Assembly (NCBI GenBank): GCA_964304625.1
Contig: OZ199839.1
Span: 7,835,166-7,899,165 of the forward strand
DNA length: 64,000 nucleotides
Origin: Kudoa neothunni
Lineage: Eukaryota; Animalia; Cnidaria
Reading direction: 5' to 3'
Shown here: positions 16,371 to 60,831 of the stretch, piece after piece
Position numbering within the stretch: the first letter of the stretch is position 1
Layout: every line of letters begins with the position of its first letter
Program-made: the position numbers and the translations under genes
The notes under the pieces: model-generated
Told to the model about the DNA's origin: nothing
Database searches by the model: none
The model's input: the letters and a program-made list of their open reading frames with translations, nothing else

Positions 16371-17897
16371 CAAATATCTTCCGAAATAATAATCGAAAAA
16401 AATAATTTGTAAGTTTGAACTAAATAGCACTTATCTGATATTGTTAAGTTATACAATTTCAACGTAAAACGTGATACACCAAGAGGATAGCAAGTTACAT
16501 AAATAAGTTTATTCAATAACCGAGAAAATAAATATTCGTCTTTTAATCAGCGCGAAACCACTACTTTGGCTAGCTTTGAGTACAGTGGATAGCGAGTAAT
16601 AAGTAATTCTTTTGGGAAGGGACGAAAAAGTGCGTATTAGCCAAGAGAGAGTTTAAATTTGAAAGTGGCTATTGGCACGGATCATAATACCCATGTAGGT
16701 TTAATTAGATACAACAGATTATAAAAAATAAACTATATCGATCCACTATAAACAGGAGATACCGTGATTAAAAATGGTCATCGGGCAAGTGTATTTGCCA
16801 TTTTTAATTAATAATTTCCATATCAATAGCCAGTGCATTTAAATTTCTTAATGTTATTATATTTTTAGACCTTAAACTCACCTAAATTAAGTTTATAAAG
16901 ATCAGCTCAACAAATGTAAAATTTTCTATGAAATAACGAAAGTAAGAATTAATCGCCACCCACGGTGGTTGCTTCAATTATTTTGGTTGATATTGGATAA
17001 CATTAATTTTCCTAAGTTTCCGTTTCCATCCAGCGACATATAATTTTTTTATGATCCCCCTACAAAAATATTAATTTAACTTCTACAAATAACGATCATC
17101 CAAAGTGAATTATTCTAATTTAATACCTTATATAGATAAATTGAAAGTTTTCGGGTAACCTTTGAATATTTTAAATTCTTCCATGCCAAAAGTTCATTTA
17201 ATTGAAAAGGAAAAAAATGCACATCCATAGCGCTCTATTTCGGATAGTTTCTCCAAAATAACATTAAAGTTTTTTGGTGATTTTTATATATTTAAAGACA
17301 GATTGTAGGTAGTTTAAATGAATTAAAACATTAGAATACGCTTAAAAAATTTGAACTAGTCCATTATAAACAATATAATTTATGTAAATGCATATTCGTA
17401 GTATATTTTATTAAGTTTTTTATTTAAAAATTTTTTACATGAATTATCTAATAAATCTCTACTGCAATTATTTATAATTATATCTACTTCACAGAAAAAA
17501 ATATGTATACGAAAAATCAATTTGTCGTAAAAAATATTAAAAGATTCAGCTTTAAGTATTCTTAAGTATGGAATAGAAATCTATTGTATCTCATTTTCCT
17601 GTAATTTCACGATATTGGCTGCCAATTTTTTATCATTTTAACAAATAACCATTTTTTGTAATATATGATCTTCAAAACGGAGAAAAAATATTAAGAGATA
17701 TTTCATCGTGGATTATTCCCGATCGTGGGCGAAGACGGACAATTTGAGTTAGTTTTAAATAAAGCAATACATATTCGACTATAATTCTCTGCATTTGTGT
17801 ATAATCAAATATATTTTGCAATAAAAACATCGAATAAGTCAATGTGATTGCCACATTGAGTCTAGCTAATAGTTTTGTGAACCATTGAGGGATTCCA

Positions 17898-18402
17898 CAT
17901 AATGATGGATTAATTTTAAATGGCCACATAATAAGAATGAATAACTTAATGAGGTGTACGAATTATGTTGGATTAATTTTAAATGGCCACATAATAAGAA
18001 TGAATAACTTAATGAGGTGTACGAATTATGTTGGATTAATTTTAAATGGCCACATAATAAGAATGAATAACTTAATGAGGTGTACGAATTATGTTGGATT
18101 AATTTTAAATGTTCTCGTAATAAGAATGAATGACTTAATGAGGTGTAAGAATTATGATGGATTAATTCTAAATGTTCTCGTAATAAGAATGAATGACTTA
18201 ATGAGGTGTAAGAATTATGATGGATTAATTCTAAATGTTCTCGTAATAAGAATGAATGACTTAATGAGGTGTAAGAATTATGATGGATTAATTCTAAATG
18301 TTCTCGTAATAAGAATGAATGACTTAATGAGGTGTAAGAATTATGATGGATTAATTCTAAATGTTCTCGTAATAAGAATGAATGACTTAATGTGGTGTAA
18401 AA
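17898..18402. repeat. 63-bp minisatellite, about 8 tandem copies
   Basis: ATGAAT(A/G)ACTTAATG recurs at 17937, 18000, 18063, 18126, 18189, 18252, 18315 and 18378 (period 63). The ORF track shows 21-aa repeats on both strands. Confidence 0.97.
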
Positions 18403-18749
18403 GTTGCAATGAGAATATACAGTCAATCGGCTCTATATTTAAAATTATTTTTAAAATTAATTACTTTGTTATTAACTACAGATAGCCTCAATATTACCTC
18501 AGACTATATTTATTTTTCGTAGTAAAACGCAATATTCCGTCCTAGCGTTATCCATTAACTTCCCTGAAATATATTTTGCCCAGTGTAAACTGTAAACTGT
18601 GAGCTTCGTTGAAAATTGTTGTTTTCAAATTTTAAACCGATTAGATATCACATCTTAAAAAAAGAATGCGATAAATAGGTATATTATTGAATTCGGAAAA
18701 GTTTGAAAGAACTCTAATAATTGCAGGCTAATTAGAACGATTTTGAATG

Positions 18750-20390: not shown

Positions 20391-22681
20391 ATGGACGAGC
20401 TCAAACAAGAACCACTTTTGACAAACGCCGATAAAGCAGGTAAAATTTTAGCTAAACGCCGATCGCATATATCATTAAATATATTTGTGTAGTAACCAAC
20501 AATAACGATGTGGAAATGGAGGTGAACGTTACCACCCCAGATACTGGAAGTAGTAGCAAACAACCCATAAGAAACAGCACATTCGAATTCCAATCACAAA
20601 AACTTAACCACCCTGCAAATGCATTAGCATCAGTACTTTTAACGGCGCCATTAATTATGGGAATATGTATCAATGCACTAGGCCATAAATCTGTACTTTG
20701 TGTTGTTTACACACAACCAATGAGATTATGTCATTATTTAGTCGATTGACAACATTCTATCGGGTGAAGACACAGATCGAATAGCTTATCTACAAGGATT
20801 ACGACCTTGGGATTGTTTGTTCCCCATAGGTGGTCTTATTGCTGCACCATCGTGCTCGTATATCTGTAGCAAATATGGCAAGTAACTTTCTACAACGATA
20901 TAATTCGAGCTTGACTATTAATTATTCGCGTGAGAAGTTAACAGATAATTGTCATCAGCTGAGGTTGATCCAATCACGAATGAGTTGTATTATGAATACT
21001 TCACTCATCAAATACAAACCAGTTCGATCAACACATATTTTAGTAATTAAATCTGTTGGATTTAAAATCTCAAAAATATTCTCATAATTTAGATTATAAT
21101 CAACAAATAGCTCATCAAACGTTAAAGCAGATAATTTTTCAACTCGAAATAACCACCTTAATAAATTATATTAATAAATAACCGCAATTCACTTGATATA
21201 AAAATAAAATAAATTTTTTCATTTTAAAACGAAAAAACTGCAGAAAATTATCGTGTTACTAATTAATGTCAAATTCGAAATAGTTTGTGTTTGTGAGCGT
21301 TCAGCAAATAATATCATATTTTATTGTGTAGGAAAATTCCAACTATAATATTCTATGTTGCCTCCCTGGTAGGATTCATCTTTAAATTTTGTGCTATGTA
21401 CACACCCTTCGAAGTGATTTTCCTTGGAAGATTTTTCGATGGAATAGCATCGGGAGGTTTAATGGTGGCAGGAGTGAGTTGGATGTTCGATTTGATCGCA
21501 AGAAGAATCCATCAAATCCATAAAGCGCTCATCCAAATCTTCATCAACCTAGGAATTCTACTCATTGCAATATTCTCGTTAGTTCAGGTACGACGAGATT
21601 ATTGGAGTTTTTCATACCTTCTGCAATTGGTGATGACAATAGCTGGGCTGGTTGCTTGTGTATTACTACCGGAAAGTCATGTCTATCTATACAACAAGAA
21701 TAGTGATCAAACAGCTCTAACACAAGCACTAAAACGCCTACGAGGAGTGGGATTCGATCAAGCAGAAGTGGATGAACTAGCCGATAGTATCGATAGAGAC
21801 TCGAATATTAGACAGGTGACTATGATGGAATTTTTCAAAGAGAGACGTTACCTTGTGGCCCTTATCACTACTATACTGATGAACATCTTCCAACAGATCA
21901 GCGGAATTAATGTGGTGGTCGCATTTACCGCAAAATTATTGACAGGAGCCGATGTAAAAACAGGCTCAGTTGGTGGCTCGACAAACCCCCGACAACTAAC
22001 CAAATTAGAGATTAAGGCCATCGCTGAATACTCCATCTATATCCTAATTGTAGGAGTACTTGGATCAGTTATTGCAGCTCCGTTTGTTGGCAGATTCCGC
22101 AGAAAAGTTATGTTAATGGTTGGATTTGGAGGAATGACCTTAAGCTTTCTATGCGCCAACTTCATACAAGCTTTCGATTTGGATAAAAATGCCCTTATCA
22201 CGGTTTTCTCGATATTTTTTTTCATCTTCCAATTCGGCCCAGGTGAGCTATAAAATTCGATTTAGAATCTTAAGCATCTAAGGTTCAGGTTCAGATTCAG
22301 ATGTTTTAGATTTAGACACTCTGATTGATCTAACATTTATTCGATCGATTGTAGGACCGTTGGTGTGGTTCATCTGTATCGAAATTTTCCCTCCCGACGC
22401 CGTCAGCTCCGCTCAAGGTGTATCCACCGTGGCCAACTGGTTCGCCAACTCTTGTGTGTATCTACTCTACCCTATTGTTTCGGTATGCTTTTTTGGTAAT
22501 ATTTTTTTGATTTACTTTACAGGACGAAATCGGATACAAAGCTGGATTCATATTCACCGTTATTAACGCGATCGCCTTCTTCTACATCACCTTCTGTGTG
22601 ATTGAAACCAACAAAAAGAAAAGTGATCAAATACTCAAGGAGTACAACCGAAAATACTCATGGCTCACGAAGCGCTTCTGA
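20391..22681 (+). CDS. Facilitated sugar transporter (SLC2A/GLUT-like, MFS sugar porter), paralogue 1, 528 aa
   Basis: Exons 20391-20439, 20493-20692, 20742-20881, 21332-22242, 22355-22482 and 22523-22681 sum to 1587 nt in frame. Motifs: FPIGGLIAA, LGRFFDG, LPES, QQISGIN, FQFGPG|PLVW, EIFP, ANW and IET. Confidence 0.93.
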
Positions 22682-25962: not shown

Positions 25963-27095
25963 TAAAACATTAGAGCAGTATGTCAACTTTATTCATGCTT
26001 AGAATATTTAACCAACAAATAAAATGATTTCTACAAATAGACGATAGTAGTTTGACTAAACGGATAAAATAACGACATTGATGATTTTTAAATAAGCTCT
26101 TATATAAGAAGAATTTTTGGGCTTACGTTAAGAAAATTAATTCCATAAATGAATTGAATGATAAGGAACTAACGATTTTCCCATTGTATAACAAGAAAAT
26201 TTAAAATAAATTTTGGTTTATAGCCCTAAAAAGATCAAGTTTACCAATATATTTTGGATAATTTCGATCAGAAATATTTTTTTAACACAAGGGTTTCCTT
26301 TATTGCATTATAACAAATTCATAAAACCATTTAATATTAATATCCATCATTTTTTAAGAATTGATATTTTTTATTGTAATATATTTAAAATTAATTATGC
26401 CTACAAGAAATTACTTGGTCAACTATAAAATAACGAAAGATAGACTTGTAGAACTTAAACATTATTTTCTGTTTCGAAACGTGTTCGCCTGTAATTTAGT
26501 TTACTTTTCATGATATTTCTATTAATCATTTTATCCAGTCCTCCAACAAATATGCTATACATGTTGTTAAATATATCTATAAAAAAACTTTTCTAAGAAG
26601 ATAGGATTAATTATAAAAGCTATAATTAAGGTCCACACGCAGTCAGAAGGTAGAGTTAAAACTTTTCTCATTTGCTTTTACGCGTGGAAGAAACTACATT
26701 AATGTTCATCGTAACATTTCTAATATACATTGTATGATTAAAAAAGATAATTATTTGAAAAAATACTGATGGAATGAGCATGGCTATGTCTCATTAATTA
26801 GGATCCTTTAATCATACTTTCAAACAAGTGAATACAGGAAAAGATAGAGAATCAAGTTCAATCTATGAAAAATTTGGGCTATTTCATTGGAATACTAATA
26901 TTGTATTTGATTTTAACTTTTTATTTTCATGACTTTTATATTAAATTGTCGATAAATAATACCTTTTATAAAGGATTTCCTAAAATTATATTGATAAACA
27001 TGAATTATGAATTATACGTCTATTCATTACAAACAAACACTTAAATTCTCCCTGAATAAAACGGAAGTTTTCGTTTCTAGATTGTTTAAATCAAA

Positions 27096-29377
27096 ATGAA
27101 GAGCATCACCTATTCAATAGGAATAATATTTATTTTTATTTGTGAATTCTTTTATTGTTACGATATTTTTTAATAGACTATAGCGAAGTCAACTCTGCAA
27201 ACTGATGAAGGATCTTCACCATCACCTCAACCTCCAGCTGCTTCAACAAACTCTCTCACCTATAAAGTTGTGGAGCACGAGAGTAATATGAAAGTTCAAT
27301 TAAAATTTACTGGCAGTGCTTATTCGGATTCTAAACATTGTTATATTAAAAAATCAAACGTGGTTGGTGAAGCCTACGAAGAAATTAATTCATGTACTGG
27401 AGATGGCCGTACGAATCAAAATGGCAAATGTGTGATGGCGTGCACTGGAGATCAAAATAAACTTAGTTTCGATATATTTTCTCCAAGGACTAAATATATT
27501 GCAGTTTTTGTAGCTGCTAGTTCCACAGAAGCCGCTGCAAAAACTACGGATGGAACAGTTTTTGGATTTGAAATACGTAATTTTCCTATATTAGAATATT
27601 CATATAAATTTTTTTAGCTTTATTGGTTAATCCAAAAGTGGCTATAAGCACTACGCACAATCAAAAATTGAAACTGTGTGCGAAAACTTGGATGGGTGCC
27701 GCATGCCCCATTTATTACAAGGATGTTAGATACGCCGAAGGAATTATTCTAAGTGATTGTACTTCAGATGATCATGATAATGAAGTCGAATTTGATTTGA
27801 TGATTCCTCATTATGAAATGAAATGCTTGGGTTATCCGAGTTTCTTTTATAAGCTTCAAAATAAATATACTTTAATGGAGACTGACGTTTACGTACCACA
27901 ATATTATGTGAAATATAATAATAAAGAGAAAACCAAATACCTACTTAAATTTACAAATAAATTTCCTTTCGAAATTTGTCGATTTGGTATAAAAGAGGAA
28001 TCAGCTACGATTACAGCTGAAGTTAAAAAAGATTATGCTTCAAATTGTGGAGGAAGTGGTAAAGATTGCTATGCACCGTGCGATAATGTTGAGCTCACAT
28101 TAACAAAATCAATAAGAGTGGTTCAAGTCTTGATACAATCCAGACATTTTAAATTAGAAAAAACCGGATCTACTTATGATGGATATACACAGAAAAAATT
28201 TGGTACTTATTATGCATTGAGATTCCAAAAATATTAGCTATTTAGTTGTCACTGAAACTAATTCTGGTCAACCCGAAGCTAAACTAATATCAGCTCATAC
28301 AGCTGCTAGCGTTACGTTAGATGTACGTCTGTTTAAACCAACTGATAATCCAAGGTTTTTGTCATGCACAGTAAAGTATTATGCTGCCAATAAGCCTAGG
28401 CCCGATACTGTCCATGAAAGAGCGAACTGTGACTCAGGAAATCAAAACTGCGTTGAAACGTGTGCTGAAACATTAACAATAACCCGACTCGATGGGGGAA
28501 AACCCTATATTCTTGAGATATCAGCTGCAGCGGTTCCAGGAGAACGCAATATTATTCCAGCACGTTTTAAAGAGCATATATTTTTCCGAACAAGTGAACT
28601 AACAAAATTCAAATTAATTGTAAATTAATATCTAGATAATGCTGGTACATCAATATTCTCCAATGTAAACGCCACAATGCGTGAGACAAGTCTATCTATC
28701 AAAGCAATTTCTGGCGATGAAGAGATTACTAGAAATGATATCACATGTGCCTACTACCTTAGTCCTCGAGGGAAGGATAGATATGTTTGTGCAATGTGCG
28801 TAAATAGTTATCCATGCAGAGGATATTGCAAAGAATTTCAAAATATTGTGGGTTTAATTCCAGGAACCGAATATGATCTCAAGATTGTTGCACATAAAGA
28901 TTATGGTTCCATAGTTCATCCAATAAGAACAGGTATCAAATATATTAATAATCAAGTAATAATTATATTTTCAGCAATTCTAACACTTGCACTTGAACAA
29001 GAATTTTTGGACAAGGGCTTCAAAGTAATGGGCACTTTGTCTACACCATATTCGGAAGCTATTTGTCATTATAAAGTAAAAGTAAAGAAAGGCGAATCTT
29101 TCGATATGGTTTATGAATGCCCAGTGTCATCTCCATCAGATAGCATCGGAAATCCCTCTGTCAAATCAACACCCCTCAGAAGCGGAGTAGCCAGATCAGC
29201 CGGTCAACAATCAACAAATGTAACACCATCAACTAAAACTACAGTCTCATCATGTCAATCTCCACCATTGTGCAGCAGTATTATATTTAGTGAAGGATAT
29301 GAAGCAGACAAAGAGTATCAAGTTTTAGTGACTGCTATAGGGAGGTCGGATGAAACCCCAATAAATATACCTAAAAG

Positions 29378-29414
<37 letters not shown>

Positions 29415-30138
29415 CAAGACTTTACAGTTTAAAATTTATTGCGTAAATTTATTAATAAATAAAGGAAGCTAGAATTATAAAAATATTTATTGAATTTATC
29501 ATTTGAATGTTTTTAGAACCCTTGCCTACACCACCTGAGGACCCTAACATGGTGATAACGATAGTGATTACACGTGATGATAAGATCCTGAATATTCAAA
29601 CGACATTGCCTCCGGGGGTTGACCAAAATTCTTTATGCAAATGGAAATTGACGAATTCGGAAGATCCATCAAATCCAATTGTACAAAAATGTATGGTAGT
29701 TGGTGAAGGTTGCAATGTGTTTCCTACCTGCAAGGAATTCACCATTTCCGATGTCGAAGATACAAACAACTATCACTTAGTCGTATATTATAGTGAGGAT
29801 GAACGTATCTCTGGAACTGGGGAAATTAACAGAGGTAAACAATGTCATTTCTTTCAGCATTTTGATTTGTTATAATAGGTGAAATTTCGAACAAATCCAC
29901 GTAAAGTTTAATTTTTAAAATCTCTTTCTAAATCTGTTTAGATCAAAAAGCACAATGTATTTTAATAATACAAGTGGTGGTTACGGTTTTAATTTTTCTA
30001 TTTAGAATTGTTTATGTTATCGTTCCATTAGCTATAGCCGTTATTGGAATAGGATTCTATTTCGGTTACTGGAAGAATAAAAGTTAGATATATTTTGATA
30101 AGAAAATTACTTAGCGTGGCTACAATCCTTTTCTTAGA
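27096..30138 (+). CDS. Type I membrane protein with signal peptide, about 7 Cys-containing FN3-like domains, one TM helix and a very short tail (~840 aa)
   Basis: Exon 1 encodes MKSITYSIGIIFIFI (signal peptide). ORFs 27270, 27623, 28359, 28677 and 29507 join through GT-AG introns. FN3 tyrosine-corner motifs include GLIPGTEYDLKIVA, LDGGKPYILEISA and YEADKEYQVLVTA. Microexons 29879-29900 and 29942-29956 lead in frame to TM IVYVIVPLAIAVIGIGFYFGYWKNK (30007-30081). The last exon is ambiguous: stop at 30087 if unspliced, ~30137 if spliced. Confidence 0.85.
29381..29412. repeat. (TA)n microsatellite in an intron
   Basis: About 16 uninterrupted AT dinucleotides just after the donor GT at 29377. Confidence 0.95.
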
Positions 30139-31899
30139 TTTGAATAATTACAATAATATGACCTTATTTTAACTATCATCTATTTATTAAATAAATGTAT
30201 TTTTTATGAAACTCTCTAATTAAACAAACTTTCCTTGACTTCTTAAATAACTAAATTTAATTTATATTAATATCAAATATTTTGAACGATATTAAAAAAA
30301 ATAAAAAAGTTTAGAATTATTAATATAACATTACATAGATAAAATTGATATTCAATGTTAATAATTGTTTAGATTAAGCGTCGAATACCAAATATTTACT
30401 TGTTTATTTTAAGTTATTTTATATTTATGTGAAATTCTGTCTGTAGTAACTTGTTCGTGATCACTTTCGTAAAAATTTTTAATTACTCTTAATATCATTA
30501 AATTTGATATTTATACGAATTCATAAAAAGGAAAGCAAATTCTAAAATTCTGTTTTATTCTCAGAAATACTAATTATAGGTGACTTTTATCCGTATTAAA
30601 GTGATTGGAGTTAATAAAAAAATATTAATAATACATAACTAGAACATTTGATTTTTATTTTTTTATTTGGGGACAAAGTATCAGGATTCGAATGATTATT
30701 TTGTATTATTGTATCGCAATACGATCTCAGTCTTACGACAAAATATTGATCGAAAAATATTTCTCCAATTAAATATGAAAATATTAAAGTTGTATTATAA
30801 TATTTACTATTAGTAATAATTATTAATATTAATTATTGATTTGAGCATGATGCGACTTTTCAACAATTAAATAAAGATGGACTTCAAAGAATAATTTTAT
30901 TGATATTTTTGTGATTTTACGATAATTAGACTATTGAAAAGTTGGATTCGATGTTTAATTTGTCAGAATTCAATAAATATAACGCTGTGATTATTTCTAG
31001 GCATATTTCAGAGTTTATGTTAAAATTACAGAATAGACGAAATAATTGTTTAGCTTTATAATTTTTAGGACTTTTTCAATATTACTGTCTTTTAAAAATA
31101 TTATCAGAATCTATTTTTTATCAGTTTGACTTATATATCAATAACAAAAACTATTAGACATAATTTTTCAATTATACAAATTTCCCCTTAAATTATTTAA
31201 GCTACTAAGAATACTAAGAATGGCGAAATTTCCTCAATTTATTTATATTTATCTTCTTCAAATAAGAATATTTGTGGGTTAAAGCTAATCCGAGGGCATA
31301 TCTGCGAGCACACAATGATTTATTATTATACATTAGTCGATCATTTGGTTGACTATGCTATTGAAAATTTTGCTGTAAGATTAAAAATTATAATTAATCT
31401 ATACATATATTCACCTAAAAAATTGATTTTATATTAAATTGATGGATGTTGATTTTTTTTTAATTTAATTAAAAATTTCCTAAAGATAAAGTTAATGGAA
31501 ATAAGCAAAAATGCGTCATTTAACTCTTTAGATATAAGTATATACGAATAATCTGTGAATTTTATATTGAAAAATAGGATTCAACATTACAAAAATAAAA
31601 ATGATGATAAGACTTAAACCTTACCCCTACTGCCTGCCAAAAAATTAAGTGTGTGCTCGCTCGAGTTATTTGTCGTACCCCACGAAAAATTTACCTTAAT
31701 GAGTTTTAAATTCCCTAAAACTCCAAATAAATTAAATAAACATATAAAAGTGTTCAATAAAGTTCAAATTAATTAGATTTTCCAGTTTCCTTAATGTAGA
31801 GAACGAGAATATTGGATTGGATTCGGTAAATGGGTCCCTAAGCCCGATGCGGTTAAAATACAGATAAAATTAAATCTACATGGAGTTTGTAAAAGAAAG

Positions 31900-36248: not shown

Positions 36249-38238
36249 ATGGCAGGAAAAAATTTGGATAATATCCAAGACCACGATACACGGGGTAATC
36301 GAGTGTTCTTTATTTAAAATATTGATTTCAATCAAATAAATCCCGAACAACATATAGAATCAGTTGAAGAAATCTCTTCCATAGGTGGTGTAGATCCCAA
36401 GGATGTACTAGTTGGTAAATAATGCACTAACCAACACTCCTGAAATCATTAAAATGCCGTATAGTTAGTACGCTTCCAAATACGCCTCAGGATACTTACG
36501 ATCATCCCGTCGAAGATCATGATACATCAGCCAATGCTGCCGATGAGCACCCTTCCAGTCGCAGAGTCAAGAAAGCATCGATAGGAAAGTTATTCTGGAT
36601 GACATTGTTACTACTCGGTCCATTCCTTATGGGGATAACTATATCCATTGGAGATGATCAATCTGTATGTGTTGTGTCTACTTATGGATTCATTATATCG
36701 ATGCGAATTAATGCTTACCTAATAGATAATAATGTCAGCATTTAATTTAACAGGTTACACCCCTAGAAATTTGTACACGCTTAATTGTGTCTATCCAATA
36801 TGTGGTATACTTGGATCGTTGTTTAGCGCAATGGCATCAAATGTGTGTGGAAGGTTGCTGTTAACGTGATACAATAATTGTGAGATTTTTGTAGACGATA
36901 CACCACACTGTTCTCATCCCAATTGGTTATTATATCGTGTTGTTTGATTTTTATTTCTTATCAAACTTCCCTCACTTTATTATATGTTTCGAGGGGGATC
37001 GATGGATTTGCAGTTAGCTCACTGATTGTTTCATCGACCGTTTGGATGATGGAAGTTGTTCCAGCCCGCAGCTTGAAATTTTACAAAGTGTTTATACAGG
37101 TTTCTATCAACCTGGGTATTCTAACAATTAATGCGATTGATTTTCCTCTGAAAAAACACAAAACCTGGGACTTAATTTGCTTTGTGCCGGTAGCGTTTGG
37201 TATACTGCTATCTGTGGCAACATTTTTTGTTTTTGAAAGTCACAAGTTTATATATGTTCGCACCAAAAACATAGAGCTAACTAGGAATGCGTTGGAAAAT
37301 TTACGAGGGACATCCAATGTTGATTGGGAATTGGAAAGAGTTATTGGCGAGATAGAAAACCAAAAGGATGCCACCAACATTCACATCGAAAAGTTTCTAT
37401 CAAACAAACGCTACGTTGCTTGTGTGGCTAGTTGGTGTATAGTGAGCTTTTTCAAGCATACTTCTGGAATCAATGTGTTCATTGGTTTTACTCGTTATTT
37501 TTTGAGTGATGACGAATCTACTATCCAAGCATATGTGGCTATTATAGTAGGATGTGTTGCATTTTTTAGTTCGGTTTGGTTTGTATGTTTATGTTTTTTT
37601 CAGTTTTTCGGACGATTGAGTGTCACTCATTCATAAATTTATATTTAGTACGGATGGAATGTATACGCTCCTAGAAAAATACAAATCGAATTGTCATTTG
37701 TATTACTAACTGTGGTGTGTGCTGTGACATCGATTGCTTGTGCATGGGATATTTCGTATATTGGCTTGGTAGCATTTACATCTTTATTTATTAGTGCGTT
37801 TCAGCTAGGCATAGGTGTGTGAGATAGCTTAAAATTTTTGTTGTAATTTTATCTTAAATGTTCTATAGGACCAACAACCTGGTATATCTGTCAAGAAATA
37901 TTTCCGTCCAATTATTTGGCCGTGGCACAAGGTTTCTTGGCAATGTTTGGATGGATTGGTGATTCTCTTATCTATTTAATTCTACCGAGTTTATACGTAT
38001 ATTATGTTGCTTACACCCCATTGCGTTAACCTATTCGAGATTTTAGCTTAAGCTTGATACCCGTACGTTCTACGTATTTACAGCAATCAATTTGGTGGCA
38101 GTGATCTTTGTTTCTTTAATTATCGAAGAAACGTTACATAAACCTATTCAAGAAATTCAACAAGCTTACTTACGCCGATGGCAACACGTTTGTTTTGGGC
38201 TAAATATTGGCATCCATGTGACCGATTTTGGTTTCTAA
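36249..38238 (+). CDS. SLC2A/GLUT-like transporter, paralogue 2 (most divergent)
   Basis: The spliced model runs MAGKNLD...LLLGPFLMG...CVYPICGILGS...VCGR|RY...SRGIDG...FESH...KHTSGIN...FQLGIG|PTTW..QEIFP...EETLHK...DFGF*. Core introns sit at positions homologous to the other paralogues. Confidence 0.9.
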
Positions 38239-41705: not shown

Positions 41706-43953
41706 ATGGAGTTAACAGAAATTTACGAAACAGAAGAACGAGCTCCCAAACGTATGTTACATTATACATATATTGAAATCATTTCCTATTAATAATAAAC
41801 GGATATTACTATTCATCAATTAACGGACCCAGAGTATACATTTTTCTAATGAAATTATTGCTCTTATAAGCAGCGATATTTATTAAACCCCCCAAAAAAT
41901 ATGCTTAATGTTATTTCAATTTCAAAACTACCTTCAATAATCAAAAATAAATTGTATATAAAATATTTCCTTGTTGAGGCTTAGAATTCAAGAGTTAATG
42001 CTTAATTCTCGTTATATTGAAATCTGTATAGTTGATTGTAGCTGATTGACTTGAAACAATATAATTAATCACATTTTAAAGGTCAACGGTAGTGATTTTT
42101 GGGATAAAGTTTCTACCATAACACGCTGTTTGATCATCGATTTTAACATTATTTTTGTTTGCTTGATGATTACGTCCGTTTGATCATGATGTTATTTTAG
42201 AAAGAGGAGACACTACTGTTCCCTTCTATGCTCCTAAACAACCATTGAACTGTTATTATGTTTTTGTTTCATCCTTCATCATCTTGGGTCCCTTCCTAAT
42301 GGGATGTATGATCAACGCATTAGCTAATGAACACGTATAATAATTTTAATTATGTAAAATTAAAATTACTCATTAATTGGGAAGTTTAGTTAATACTTTC
42401 GCAATTTGTCAAACTGAAATACAAAGAAGGAAATGAGACTGAATATGAACATTTAAAAAAAACACTACCAATAGGAGGACTTTTTCCACTTGGTGGTCTC
42501 GTTGGAGCTTTTCTTGGTGGTCTACTTGTCGACAAGTGTGGGAGGTAATTCACATAACTTAATCTATTTTTGAAAAAGACCATTAATTAAACAAAATTAC
42601 AGAAAGTACAGCACAATTTTTCTTACACAATTAATGATACTCGGAAACATTCTCAAGGTCATCTCTTTTTCATATAATATTTGGATATTATATGCTGGAA
42701 GATTATTTGATGGTATTGCTTCTGGAGGGTTAATGGTATCTTGTGTGAATTGGCTTCTTGAAATGCAGCCCACTAGATTACACTCTACTATTAAACCAAT
42801 CATTCAAATCCTTATTAATACAGGCATATTGGTGTTTGGATGTTTGATGACTGATTTCGCCTTTAACACCCAATGGTTTCTTGTGTATTGGGTTGCCATT
42901 GCTTTCTCACTGATATTAACAATCGCATCGTTTATACTACCTGAAAGCTACCAATTCATCTATCAGAAAACTCGAGACGAAAATACTGCTAGAGAGTATC
43001 TACAAAAAATTCGTGGTAGTGGCTATATGGAAGAGGAGTTGTTGAGTGTAGTCAATCAAGTCAAGAGTGCCAGCAGTGTTAAAAAAATGTCCATGATGAC
43101 ATTTATTAAAACTAAAAAATTCCGACCTGGCATAATCAGTGGAATCTATATCAACCTTGCCCAACAAATTACCGGTATCAACGCTATTGCAGCATTCACT
43201 GGAACCATTATTGAAAGTCTGCGAACACCTGAGGAAAATAAAGAAATTTCTAGCAAGCCTAATAGTGAACTAAGTGGCTCATTAATAGCCCAAAAATACA
43301 TCGGTTTACTCATTTTAGCTAGTGGTTTCTTGGGCTCTGTGATTTTTGTATTCGATAATAATTCAAGTTTTGTATATTATTTATAAATTTTAGGCAAAAT
43401 TTGTTTCAAACTATAGAAGAAAAATGATGTTGATCATTGGTTTTGCTGGTATGACTATTAGTTTTTCACTTACAATGTTACTCAACGCATGGGGTGCAAG
43501 TCCTATTGCTACTGGTGTTTGCCTGGCATCATTCTTCTTAATTTTCCAAGTTGGACCAGGTAATTCTGAAAACTTTAACTACAAATCCACACTCATTATT
43601 ATAACTATTTTAGGTCCTCTCGTTTGGTTTATCACCTCGGAAATGTTCCCAGCCGAAACGCACACCTCTGCTTTGAGTTTGACCACTGTAGCAAATTGGA
43701 TTGGAAACTCTTGTGTGTTTTTCCTTTTCCCAGTTGTAAAGGTATGTATATTATCTTTAATACTAATAATTTCGTATATGCATTTTGATATATTTTGGTA
43801 TTTTAGGGAATTATTGGAATAAAGTCACTTTACATTTTCATCGCGTTCAATGTTCTGACTCTATTCTTCCTCTCATTCTTGATGGAAGAAACCCTCGGCA
43901 AATCTCCAGATGAGGTTATTGCAAGCTACCAAAAACGCTGGCATATGTCATAA
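41706..43953 (+). CDS. SLC2A/GLUT-like transporter, paralogue 3
   Basis: Probable exon 1 MELTEIYETEERAPK|GTATGT (from 41706) is phase-compatible with the acceptor at 42200. Motifs: LGPFLMG, FPLGGLVG, DKCGR|K, AGRLFDG, LPES, QQITGIN, FQVGPG|PLVW, SEMFP, ANW and EETLGKS. Stop TAA at 43951-43953. Confidence 0.93.
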
Positions 43954-59065: not shown

Positions 59066-60831
59066 ATGTACTTTGGTATTATTCATTATTTTCGGGTTAT
59101 GATACTTTTTTTAGAAGACGATACAATTTCATTTTGTACTCGAAATAATGTATCGAATAGAAACTATAACTTTGTTTCGTGGTTTATCATGTTGGGGCCA
59201 TTCATAATTGGTTGCATGGTCAACGCCTTAGGTGACAACAGTGTATAATTATCAATATAAAATAAGAAAATAATTGATAAATATAGTTAATACTAAAAAG
59301 GTTTCTCTTATTGAAAAATCAGGAAGCGAATCAGACCGAATACGATGCACTCAAAAAAACATTAACACTAGGAGGACTTTTTCCACTTGGTGGCCTCATT
59401 GGCGCTTATTTCGGTGGTGTGCTTGTTGACAAGTGTGGGAGGTAATTCAAATCCCTTAATCTATTCTTAAAAACAACCATTAATTAAATATAAATTTAGA
59501 AAGTACACCACAATTTTTCTCACACAAATCATGATATTAGGGAACGCTCTCAAGGTTTTATCATTTTCGATGAATATTTGGATATTCTATAGTGGGAGAT
59601 TATTGGATGGTATTGGTTCTGGGGGCTTAATGGTGACATGTGTGAACTGGCTTCTTGAAATGCAGCCCGCTAAATTACACCCAATCATCAAGCCGCTCAT
59701 TTACATAAGTTTGAACGCAGGTGTGTTAGTTTTTGGAATTTTGATTAGTGGCTTCGGCTTTAATACCGAATGGTATCTCGCCTATTGGGTTGCGATTTTT
59801 GCTGCTGAGCTGCTTACAATTGTATCGGGGTTACTGCCTGAAAGCTACAAATTCATCTACCAGAAAACTAATGATGTAAATGTTGCTAGAGAGTATCTGC
59901 AAAAGATTCATGGTGATGGTTATATGGAAGAGGAATTTCTGGATGTAATCAATCCAGTCACAAGTACCAGCAGTGTTAAACAAGTTTCCATTACAGATTT
60001 GTATAAGAGTAGGAGATTCCAGCCTGCAATTATCACTGGAATCTATATCTACCTTGCGCAGCAAATTACTGGTATCAATGCTATTGTAGCATTCACCGAA
60101 AATATTATTAAAAGTCTGCGATCAACTTCTGGTAATAAACAAGTTGATACCAACTCGTTAAATTATTCAGAAAGCCCGCAAAAATACATCTCTCTACTTA
60201 TAATAGCCAGTGGATTATTGGGATCTGTGATTTTTGTATTTGATAACAATTCAAGCTTTAAATTATTTAGAAATTTTAGGCAAAATTTATTGCAAAATAC
60301 AGACGAAAAATGATGCTCCTAATTGGATATGCTGGTATGACTATTAGTCTCTCACTTACCATGTTGCTTTATGTATGGGGTGCAAGTCCTATCGTTACTG
60401 GCATTTGTTTGGGATCGTTCGTTTTAGTCCATCAGATTGGACCAGGTAACTCTTACAAGCCGAAATCCAAATGCACGCTCGTTGTTAATGATATTTTAGG
60501 TCCTTTTGTGTGGTTCATCATACTAGAAATGCTCCCAGCCGAGACACACGCAGCAGCTTTGAGTTTAACAACTATCGCCAATTGGCTTGCACAAGCTTTG
60601 GTCTATTTCCTTTTCCCCATAGTTGAGGTATACACAACACTTTCTATGGTGGTATTATGTCGTTATTATTTTCACTTTATTCAGTATCATATTGGAATTA
60701 AATCGCTTTACATTTTTATCGGTTCAAACGTTCTGACCCTGTTCTTCCTTTGCTTTTTGATGGAAGAAACTCTCGGCAAATCTCCACACGAGGTCATCGC
60801 TAACTATCAAAAACGTTGGGGTAGACAATGA
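59066..60831 (+). CDS. SLC2A/GLUT-like transporter, paralogue 4 (closest to paralogue 3)
   Basis: Motifs: LGPFIIG, FPLGGLIG, DKCGR|K, SGRLLDG, LPES, QQITGIN, HQIGPG|PFVW, ANW and EETLGKS; stop TGA at the end of ORF 60310-60831. The true start is uncertain: either the in-frame ATG at 59066 or an upstream exon (~58830-58872) spliced to the acceptor near 59114. Confidence 0.9.

Follow-up and report, generated by a model that had tools for sequence, protein, structure and literature searches.

What kind of protein is encoded by a gene made of repeated four-cysteine modules, and does that gene stand alone in its genome? The question is raised by a locus of the myxozoan Kudoa neothunni, which lies in a stretch of 64,000 nucleotides (hereafter the window; assembly GCA_964304625.1, contig OZ199839.1, positions 7,835,166 to 7,899,165 of the forward strand). 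An earlier reading of this DNA, referred to below as the original prediction, had proposed an orphan surface protein composed of a variant fibronectin type III (FN3) domain. Myxozoans are economically important parasites of fish, and the molecules at their interface with the host are almost unknown. The reading favoured here, given a probability of roughly 0.6, is that the gene encodes a rod of seven modules anchored in the membrane and bearing diversifying loops, whose ectodomain would serve as a binding or coat protein.

Gene structure and predicted architecture

Comparison with related copies in the same genome indicates an intact gene at this locus, coding for a type I membrane protein. 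The spliced model on the forward strand extends from 27096 to 30087 of the window in ten exons, with an open frame throughout and a product of 835 amino acids; the stop codon lies at 30085-30087, 51 nt before the position (30138) at which the gene had been thought to end. All nine introns run from GT to AG, and measure, in order, 42, 41, 43, 42, 42, 140, 44, 41 and 49 nt. Those around the large exons E1 to E7, seven in all, are in phase 1, and the two that follow the micro-exons are in phase 2. Large exons flanked throughout by phase-1 introns are typical of shuffled extracellular modules. The same arrangement is widely retained: phase-1 splicing with open frames is possible at all five E2-E7 junctions in 37 of 40 paralogues, with median intron lengths of 41-47 nt. 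Searches and fold predictions were carried out exon by exon, the joined translation being used only for the length of the protein, the cysteine spacings and the motifs.

Exon 1 (27096-27141) opens with the ATG at 27096, encodes a hydrophobic leader resembling a signal peptide, MKSITYSIGIIFIFI, and ends in phase 1; it is 87% identical to that of L009, the closest paralogue. A Ser/Pro-rich linker follows in exon 2 (27184-27576), and then the first of seven modules of about 100 amino acids, D1 (cysteine spacing 17/11/3), at the tip of the ectodomain. Exon 3 (27618-28202) encodes both D2 (8/17/21) and D3 (22/6/3), and exon 4 (28246-28593) encodes D4 (20/6/3), in which the cysteine-stapled C'-E loop and the FG loop are variable. 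The conserved exon 5 (28636-28932) contains D5, with a classic LxPGTEYxhxhxA motif and a spacing of 13/2/5/3, equivalent to 16/5/3 plus an extra, non-conserved cysteine. D6 (17/44/5) is encoded by exon 6 (28975-29376), the length of which ranges from 333 to 486 nt among paralogues; its 44-residue insert between the second and third cysteines is rich in Ser, Thr and Pro, which make up 50% of the insert and the two cysteines flanking it. D7 (17/6/5; exon 7, 29517-29834) is the module nearest the membrane. It is followed by the juxtamembrane stalk GEISNKSTSKST, to which two micro-exons contribute: exon 8 (29879-29900; 22 nt, entered in phase 1 and left in phase 2), coding for GEISNKS, and exon 9 (29942-29956; 15 nt, phase 2 at both ends), coding for TSKST. 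Exon 10 (30006-30087) supplies the transmembrane helix IIVYVIVPLAIAVIGIGFYFGYW, which coincides with the hydropathy maximum of the whole protein at residues 806-828, then a basic cytoplasmic tail of four residues, KNKS, and the stop codon TAG.

The division of the 3' end into two micro-exons and exon 10 is preferred because these pieces and their splice sites are conserved among paralogues, some of which have stop codons in between. Both micro-exons, together with the flanking AG and GT, are present in 12 of 12 aligned paralogues, and micro-exon 8 is required to keep the frame open. The end of exon 10 is likewise conserved, as GxGFYFGYWKN[KR][NSG] followed directly by the stop, and several paralogues have stops immediately upstream of this exon. 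A model with a single last exon starting at 29942, giving 844 amino acids and about 40 hydrophobic residues, can thus be ruled out by the paralogue stops and the two conserved micro-exons. To the eye, the micro-exons and their splice sites seem better conserved in the DNA alignment of paralogues than the adjacent large exons, which may be due to splicing constraints. A separate observation concerns intron 6, the long one, which contains a (TA)n microsatellite at 29384-29413, where Logan contigs break.

In its main lines this architecture had been anticipated: the signal-peptide leader, about seven repeats, the transmembrane helix and a tail of at most 10 residues are all present, and the proposed lack of a signalling tail agrees with an intracellular portion consisting only of KNKS. 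The cysteine spacings earlier given for six repeats are reproduced exactly on the spliced model, and D2, which had not been counted, likewise has four cysteines. Each of the seven modules has four conserved cysteines, and as these are invariant or nearly so across 33-41 aligned paralogues, the pattern cannot be attributed to chance. Cysteine accounts for 29 of the 835 residues (3.5%), with one CxxC. Motifs resembling the FN3 tyrosine corner occur in D1 and D4-D7, all five of the strings previously listed being found in the exon translations, and the tryptophan of strand B, earlier described as not evident, is indeed absent, there being three tryptophans in the entire protein.

Folds were predicted with AlphaFold2 on paralogue alignments for D2, D3 and D4. 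The D4 model, built on 38 sequences, has a mean predicted local distance difference test (pLDDT) score of 84.5 and a predicted template modelling (TM) score of 0.75. Nearly all of its top Foldseek matches are FN3 domains, mostly monobodies or adnectins, with a probability of 1.0 and TM-scores, normalised by target, of 0.54-0.69 for 10FN3 and monobodies (0.67 for 1fna); alignment to FN3 domains with VIA-align gives Z-scores of 8.3-9.0 and root mean square deviations (rmsd) of 2.6-3.0 Å over 82-89 residues. The exon 3 model, built on 41 sequences, comprises two all-beta domains (pLDDT 80.7), for which the Foldseek neighbours in the PDB are the ectodomains of tandem FN3 receptors and those in the ESM Atlas are fn3 clusters (TM-score 0.44-0.54). 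Taken separately with VIA, D3 scores Z 6.1-6.5 against FN3 domains and D2 scores Z 6.3-6.7 against immunoglobulin (Ig)-like sandwiches. The predicted structures thus give a clear FN3 fold for D4, an FN3-like one for D3 and a generic Ig-like sandwich for D2. In the D4 and D3 models the strands form a seven-strand A-B-E / C-C'-F-G sandwich that can be superposed on solved FN3 domains. The structural check that had been suggested, prediction and Foldseek searching repeat by repeat, therefore yields beta-sandwich folds for the three modules on which it was run. D1 and D5-D7 would be modules of the same kind, judging from the four-cysteine register, the tyrosine-corner strings and weak FN3 matches.

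These matches, all below threshold in Pfam, fall on the tyrosine-corner stretches: exon 5 matches FN3_DSCAM (E-value 0.02) and fn3 (0.23), and exon 2 matches the FN3 domain of NDNF (0.043). The fn3 family was also matched in 6 of the 38 D4 paralogues, at best with an E-value of 0.0039, which is below the gathering score. A D4 profile searched against the PDB returned only a titin FN3 domain (E-value 0.022), and an exon 3 profile found nothing there. The comparison with canonical FN3 (Pfam PF00041) has two sides. The predicted sandwiches of D4 and D3, the FN3 domains at the top of their Foldseek and VIA lists, the E-F 'LxxGxxYxhxhxA' tyrosine-corner motif and the beads-on-a-string arrangement of modules on their own phase 1-1 exons (D2 and D3 sharing one) are all FN3-like. 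By contrast, the Kudoa modules score below the gathering threshold, have four conserved cysteines, lack the strand-B tryptophan and have an enlarged and stapled C'-E region. The idea of an FN3 variant is supported as regards the FN3- or Ig-like sandwiches predicted for D2-D4 and the four-cysteine staple, with D2 looking more like a generic Ig-like domain than FN3.

Paralogues and their variability

The description of the gene as an orphan does not hold within its own genome. A search with the D4 exon gave 294 candidates and at least 150 scored matches with 33-61% identity, and exon 3 gave 474 candidate copies, the best 150 of which were scored; all of these had E-values below 1e-47 and identities of 44-77%, and only 5 contained stop codons. 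A degenerate DNA pattern for C[YF]APC matched 249 times, as against 14 times for a reversed control, and the difference implies at least about 235 copies. The order of E2-E7 is colinear in all 40 of the paralogues sampled. Copies are found on all three large contigs, many clustered in arrays and others scattered; arrays near chromosome ends lie at 0.07-0.38 and 10.8-11.03 of the 11.05 Mb of contig 3 and at 16.3-16.9 of the 17.15 Mb of contig 1. By these comparisons the family has at least about 235 full-length, colinear members, mostly intact, distributed over all three chromosomes, and it is only the family as a whole that is without named relatives.

The gene in the window has the features of this family, namely colinear E2-E7, four cysteines per module and a transmembrane helix followed by a basic tail of 4-5 residues, and it contains all of the D2-D3 motifs typical of it (IPxYEMxC..YPSFFY, EICxF, CGG..KxC[YF]APCxNVEL and IQxRH). 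The exon 3 tree places it as the sister of L009 (support 100/98) inside a deeply structured family, in which sister copies are frequently on different chromosomes, L009 itself being on another chromosome than the window gene. With this copy (G000:C3:3385400-3390300) it shares a block of 79% DNA identity found by blastn, 26591-30425 on the forward strand, which extends beyond the coding sequence (CDS) by about 500 bp on the upstream side and about 340 bp on the downstream side. DNA similarity to the other paralogues is confined to the CDS, and shared terminal repeats are absent. As similarity ends at the CDS for every copy except the sister, a transposon-borne gene can be ruled out, and these copies are those of a gene family rather than of a transposon. 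One further observation concerns the DNA run X1, in which contig word depth rises from about 5 to 30-70 over 27749-27962 of the window, the best-conserved region of exon 3, which codes for IPHYEM..YPSFFY; this is the expected signature of k-mers common to many paralogues.

The extent to which the copies differ varies between modules. With conservation expressed as the frequency of the commonest residue in each alignment column, averaged by module, the lowest means are those of D1 (0.48) and D4 (0.52) and the highest those of D2-D3 (0.67) and D5 (0.66). Within D4, the segment between the second and fourth cysteines, corresponding to the C'-E loop, has an entropy of 2.26 bits even though three invariant cysteines are included, and the FG loop has 2.18 bits, as compared with 0.6-1.3 bits in strands C, F and G. 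In the FN3 topology the C'-E and FG loops are located at the N-terminal pole, the face used by engineered monobodies. From this topology, the two variable loops of D4 would be expected to point away from the membrane. A disulfide-pinned variable loop had been envisaged on every domain; this is consistent with D1, D4, D6 and D7, but not with D3 and D5, where the cysteine loop is among the most conserved parts.

Ratios of non-synonymous to synonymous divergence (dN/dS, or omega) with respect to L009 are 0.27-0.40 in every exon, from which it follows that the gene is under constraint. Across 11 independent pairs of paralogues, omega is 0.66 in the loops of D4 and 0.26 in its core. Measurement of dN/dS in the cysteine loops, as had been proposed, thus points, for D4, to relaxed constraint; the value does not exceed 1, and positive selection of these loops is not shown by the 11 pairs. 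Synonymous divergence from L009 is itself uneven, with dS at 0.31-0.38 in E3 and E5-E7 and at 0.81-0.83 in E2 and E4. Since these estimates differ between exons relative to one and the same paralogue, the mosaic suggests segmental exchange, or gene conversion, among copies.

Proposed role and competing explanations

On the favoured reading, the protein would stand on the plasma membrane of the parasite as a rod of seven modules, about 25 nm long if some 3.5 nm per module is assumed. Because a tail of four residues cannot signal, the ectodomain alone would act, by binding or as a coat, at the interface between parasite and host (or between parasites). D2-D3 and D5 would provide a constant scaffold or a common binding unit, and the individuality of each copy would come from the loops of D1, at the tip, and of D4, D6 and D7. 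Diversity would be concentrated in the C'-E loop, stapled by a putative disulfide between the second and fourth cysteines, and in the FG loop. The copies would diversify by relaxed constraint on these loops together with segmental exchange, and not by demonstrable positive selection. The conserved transmembrane segment, with its Pro, GxG and FYFGYW, may be used for sorting or for contact with a membrane partner.

Several observations weigh against this account. The gathering score of Pfam is reached by no exon, the fn3 match standing at 12.1 bits against a cutoff of 25 (E-value 0.23). The Z-scores of the D2 and D3 models are 'middling' on the tool's own scale, and when D4 and D3 are aligned by hhalign the four cysteines fall in register at an E-value of 0.072, which is not significant. 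Common descent of the seven modules is therefore suggested by their shared cysteine register and fold, without significant sequence statistics. Surface exposure is deduced from the predicted signal peptide and transmembrane helix, and the expression and splicing of the gene from comparative evidence. The sequencing runs that contain the sequence are of DNA, and three metatranscriptome runs under the same species label yielded 0 reads, a result that carries no weight against transcription. Finally, the strong conservation of D2-D3 and of the transmembrane segment could signify a conserved partner, and with it a role other than the display of diversity.

Some resemblance to known surface proteins can be recognised by analogy. 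The taeniid oncosphere antigens EG95, TSOL18 and To45W, of which the original prediction was reminded, share a secretory signal, the FN3 fold and a C-terminal hydrophobic anchor, but they have one FN3 domain and no four-cysteine staple, form small families and belong to a different phylum; a sequence relationship to them was seen in none of the searches run. Toxoplasma SRS/SAG proteins and the Plasmodium 6-Cys s48/45 proteins are similarly families of tandem surface beta-sandwiches with a fixed cysteine pattern and variable loops, although they have six cysteines in each module, differ in fold subtype and mostly carry glycosylphosphatidylinositol (GPI) anchors, and the Pfam scan of the window exons gave no match to either family. 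A further comparison is with the VSPs of Giardia and the VSP-like genes reported for Sphaerospora molnari (bioRxiv 10.64898/2026.02.11.705288), which likewise form a large family of cysteine-containing type I proteins with a single transmembrane helix and, behind it, a basic tail that is conserved and very short. In VSPs, cysteine exceeds 10%, CXXC motifs are numerous and the tail, which resembles CRGKA, is conserved (bioRxiv 10.64898/2026.02.11.705288). The Kudoa protein, with its 3.5% cysteine, single CxxC and KNKS tail, has none of these properties and no sequence similarity to VSPs, which are not FN3 proteins.

Such comparisons bear on the possibility that the copies constitute an archive of variant surface antigens, in which several hundred FN3-based genes would be used in the manner of the VSG, VSP or var-type families of protozoan parasites: one or a few would be expressed at once and their loops reshuffled by gene conversion, so that the coat is changed to escape fish antibodies, or is varied to match host tissues. 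A large type I family with variable ectodomain loops, a conserved transmembrane segment and a conserved basic tail of only a few residues would fit this, as would the mosaic of dS, which suggests exchange between copies, the many arrays, some near chromosome ends, and the VSP-, RIFIN- and STEVOR-like families claimed in another myxozoan, S. molnari (bioRxiv 10.64898/2026.02.11.705288). It is less easily reconciled with an omega in the D4 loops that does not rise above 1, and with the fact that D2-D3, which is conserved best, lies distally in the ectodomain, in its outer half, and not beside the membrane. Moreover, Kudoa plasmodia reside inside muscle fibres, where antibody pressure is expected to be low. 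An archive of this type is considered unlikely; if it did exist, it would represent an independently evolved variant-surface system in a cnidarian, on a disulfide-stapled FN3 scaffold with loops resembling complementarity-determining regions. It is similarly improbable that the proteins act within the parasite, in adhesion or recognition among its primary and secondary, valvogenic and capsulogenic cells or as a coat of spore or plasmodium, in place of lost metazoan adhesion molecules. Adhesion molecules are commonly built as a rod of FN3 modules with a short tail, the strong conservation of D2-D3 and D5 could reflect homophilic contacts or the binding of a partner, and the gene repertoire is reduced (5,316 predicted proteins; PMC12239612), but hundreds of diverged copies far exceed the needs of structural adhesion.

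The mode of anchorage could also differ from that proposed, if the hydrophobic C-terminus were a GPI signal cleaved within the Ser/Asn/Lys/Thr stalk, leaving a mature protein with no transmembrane helix. Many parasite coat families are GPI-anchored, and a stalk of small residues (SNKSTSKST) does directly precede a 23-residue hydrophobic end with only four residues beyond it; yet the two lysines past this stretch better fit a stop-transfer anchor, and conservation of Pro, GxG and FYFGYW would serve no purpose in a peptide that is removed, so that this alternative is highly doubtful. A signalling receptor resembling those for cytokines, or an orthologue of a known FN3 receptor, is essentially excluded. 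Disulfide-bearing tandem FN3 receptors (IL-17RA, the class I cytokine receptor homology modules and CD45 d1-d4) are the nearest solved neighbours of D2-D3, the best Foldseek matches being IL-17RA, the common gamma chain, IL-7Ralpha and gp130, but their TM-scores are only about 0.3, with rmsd values of 11-14 Å. In addition, WSxWS is absent from the 835 residues, the tail offers no space for box motifs or a kinase, PDB profile searches with D4 and exon 3 found no sequence match to solved receptors, and no homologue with a name was recovered. Least credible of all, and essentially excluded as well, is a gene that does not work, belonging to a repeat family or to decaying copies that are merely coding-like. 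The size of the family is such that it may have been treated as a repeat, RepeatModeler masking having been applied to a genome with 45.6% repeats (PMC12239612). This is opposed by omega values of 0.27-0.40, a frame open over ten exons, invariant cysteines, the retention of splice sites, phases and frames in 37 of 40 paralogues and, for most copies, similarity that is limited to the CDS and a lack of terminal repeats in common. The preferred interpretation accordingly remains a membrane-anchored binding or coat protein with diversifying loops.

External relatives, annotation and surroundings

When exon 3 was searched with phmmer against 1.84 billion representative proteins, 14 matches were obtained, 13 of which are unnamed singleton fragments of 123-333 amino acids from ENA or Logan assemblies. 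The remaining one, P0010, is an unnamed ENA protein of 3501 amino acids on a 116-kb contig, and aligns only at the cysteine loop of D3 (27% over 48 amino acids, E-value 7.5e-08); the four-cysteine module may, on this sequence similarity, also be a building block of much larger proteins. Two Logan contigs from other public runs, L049 (4611 bp, 16.6% GC) and L050 (2166 bp, 29.4% GC), carry diverged members with the same exon order, which implies the existence of relatives in other AT-rich organisms; L050 has lost an intron, so that its exons 2 and 3 form one open frame. A profile search of a word-indexed database gave a single match, also unnamed, no relative was found in JGI metagenome contigs, and a search of the ESM Atlas by sequence features gave no usable match. 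A named homologue is thus absent from the phmmer, word-index, JGI metagenome and PDB searches alike.

The published K. neothunni assembly, obtained from yellowfin tuna data, comprises 40.2 Mb with an N50 of 12.0 Mb, in three chromosomes and a circular mitochondrial genome (PMC12239612). It is described as having an exonic GC content of 36.84%, a genomic GC content of 30.41% and an intron length of 49 bp, and as having yielded almost no usable RNA reads (PMC12239612). The exons of the window gene have a GC content of 36.9%, and the window itself, at about 30%, is AT-rich. As repeats were masked by RepeatModeler before annotation (PMC12239612), the family was presumably masked in large part before the published gene set was produced. 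No such fibronectin-like family is described in that paper or in the other myxozoan papers examined, and the combination of Kudoa with fibronectin type III was not found in the literature searched. The four-cysteine FN3 variant, the conserved D2-D3 unit and a myxozoan family of several hundred genes thus appear to be undescribed; the fold and the general design are already known, and the window gene is an ordinary member of its family.

Set against the 5,316 predicted proteins, at least about 235 mostly intact genes would amount to some 4% of the gene complement. Should they constitute the main surface repertoire, they would provide diagnostics, as well as research on tissue tropism and immune evasion, with candidates, and would offer a natural FN3 scaffold with disulfide-stapled variable loops, a design used in engineered monobodies. 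They would at the same time serve as a warning that the 'reduced' gene counts of myxozoans are underestimates.

The gene itself is a singleton between sugar-transporter genes, an array of the family starting about 94 kb downstream. On the forward strand of the window, open-frame pieces matching Sugar_tr or MFS_1 (E-values from 4e-32 to 1.5e-08) occur at 21324-22253, 36923-37636, 42634-43386 and 59531-60831, and by these matches the surface-protein gene lies amid a run of sugar-transporter paralogues. Scans of the window for tRNA genes and Rfam families found nothing. An open frame on the reverse strand, at 17866-18426, matches DNA-binding domain 2 of phenylalanyl-tRNA synthetase (E-value 1e-07) and is probably part of the gene for that enzyme. 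Elsewhere in the genome, the repeat (TAAACC)n is present only at G000:C2:12039536-12040069, the extreme end of contig 2, which corresponds to the single assembled (TAAACC)n telomere already reported (PMC12239612).

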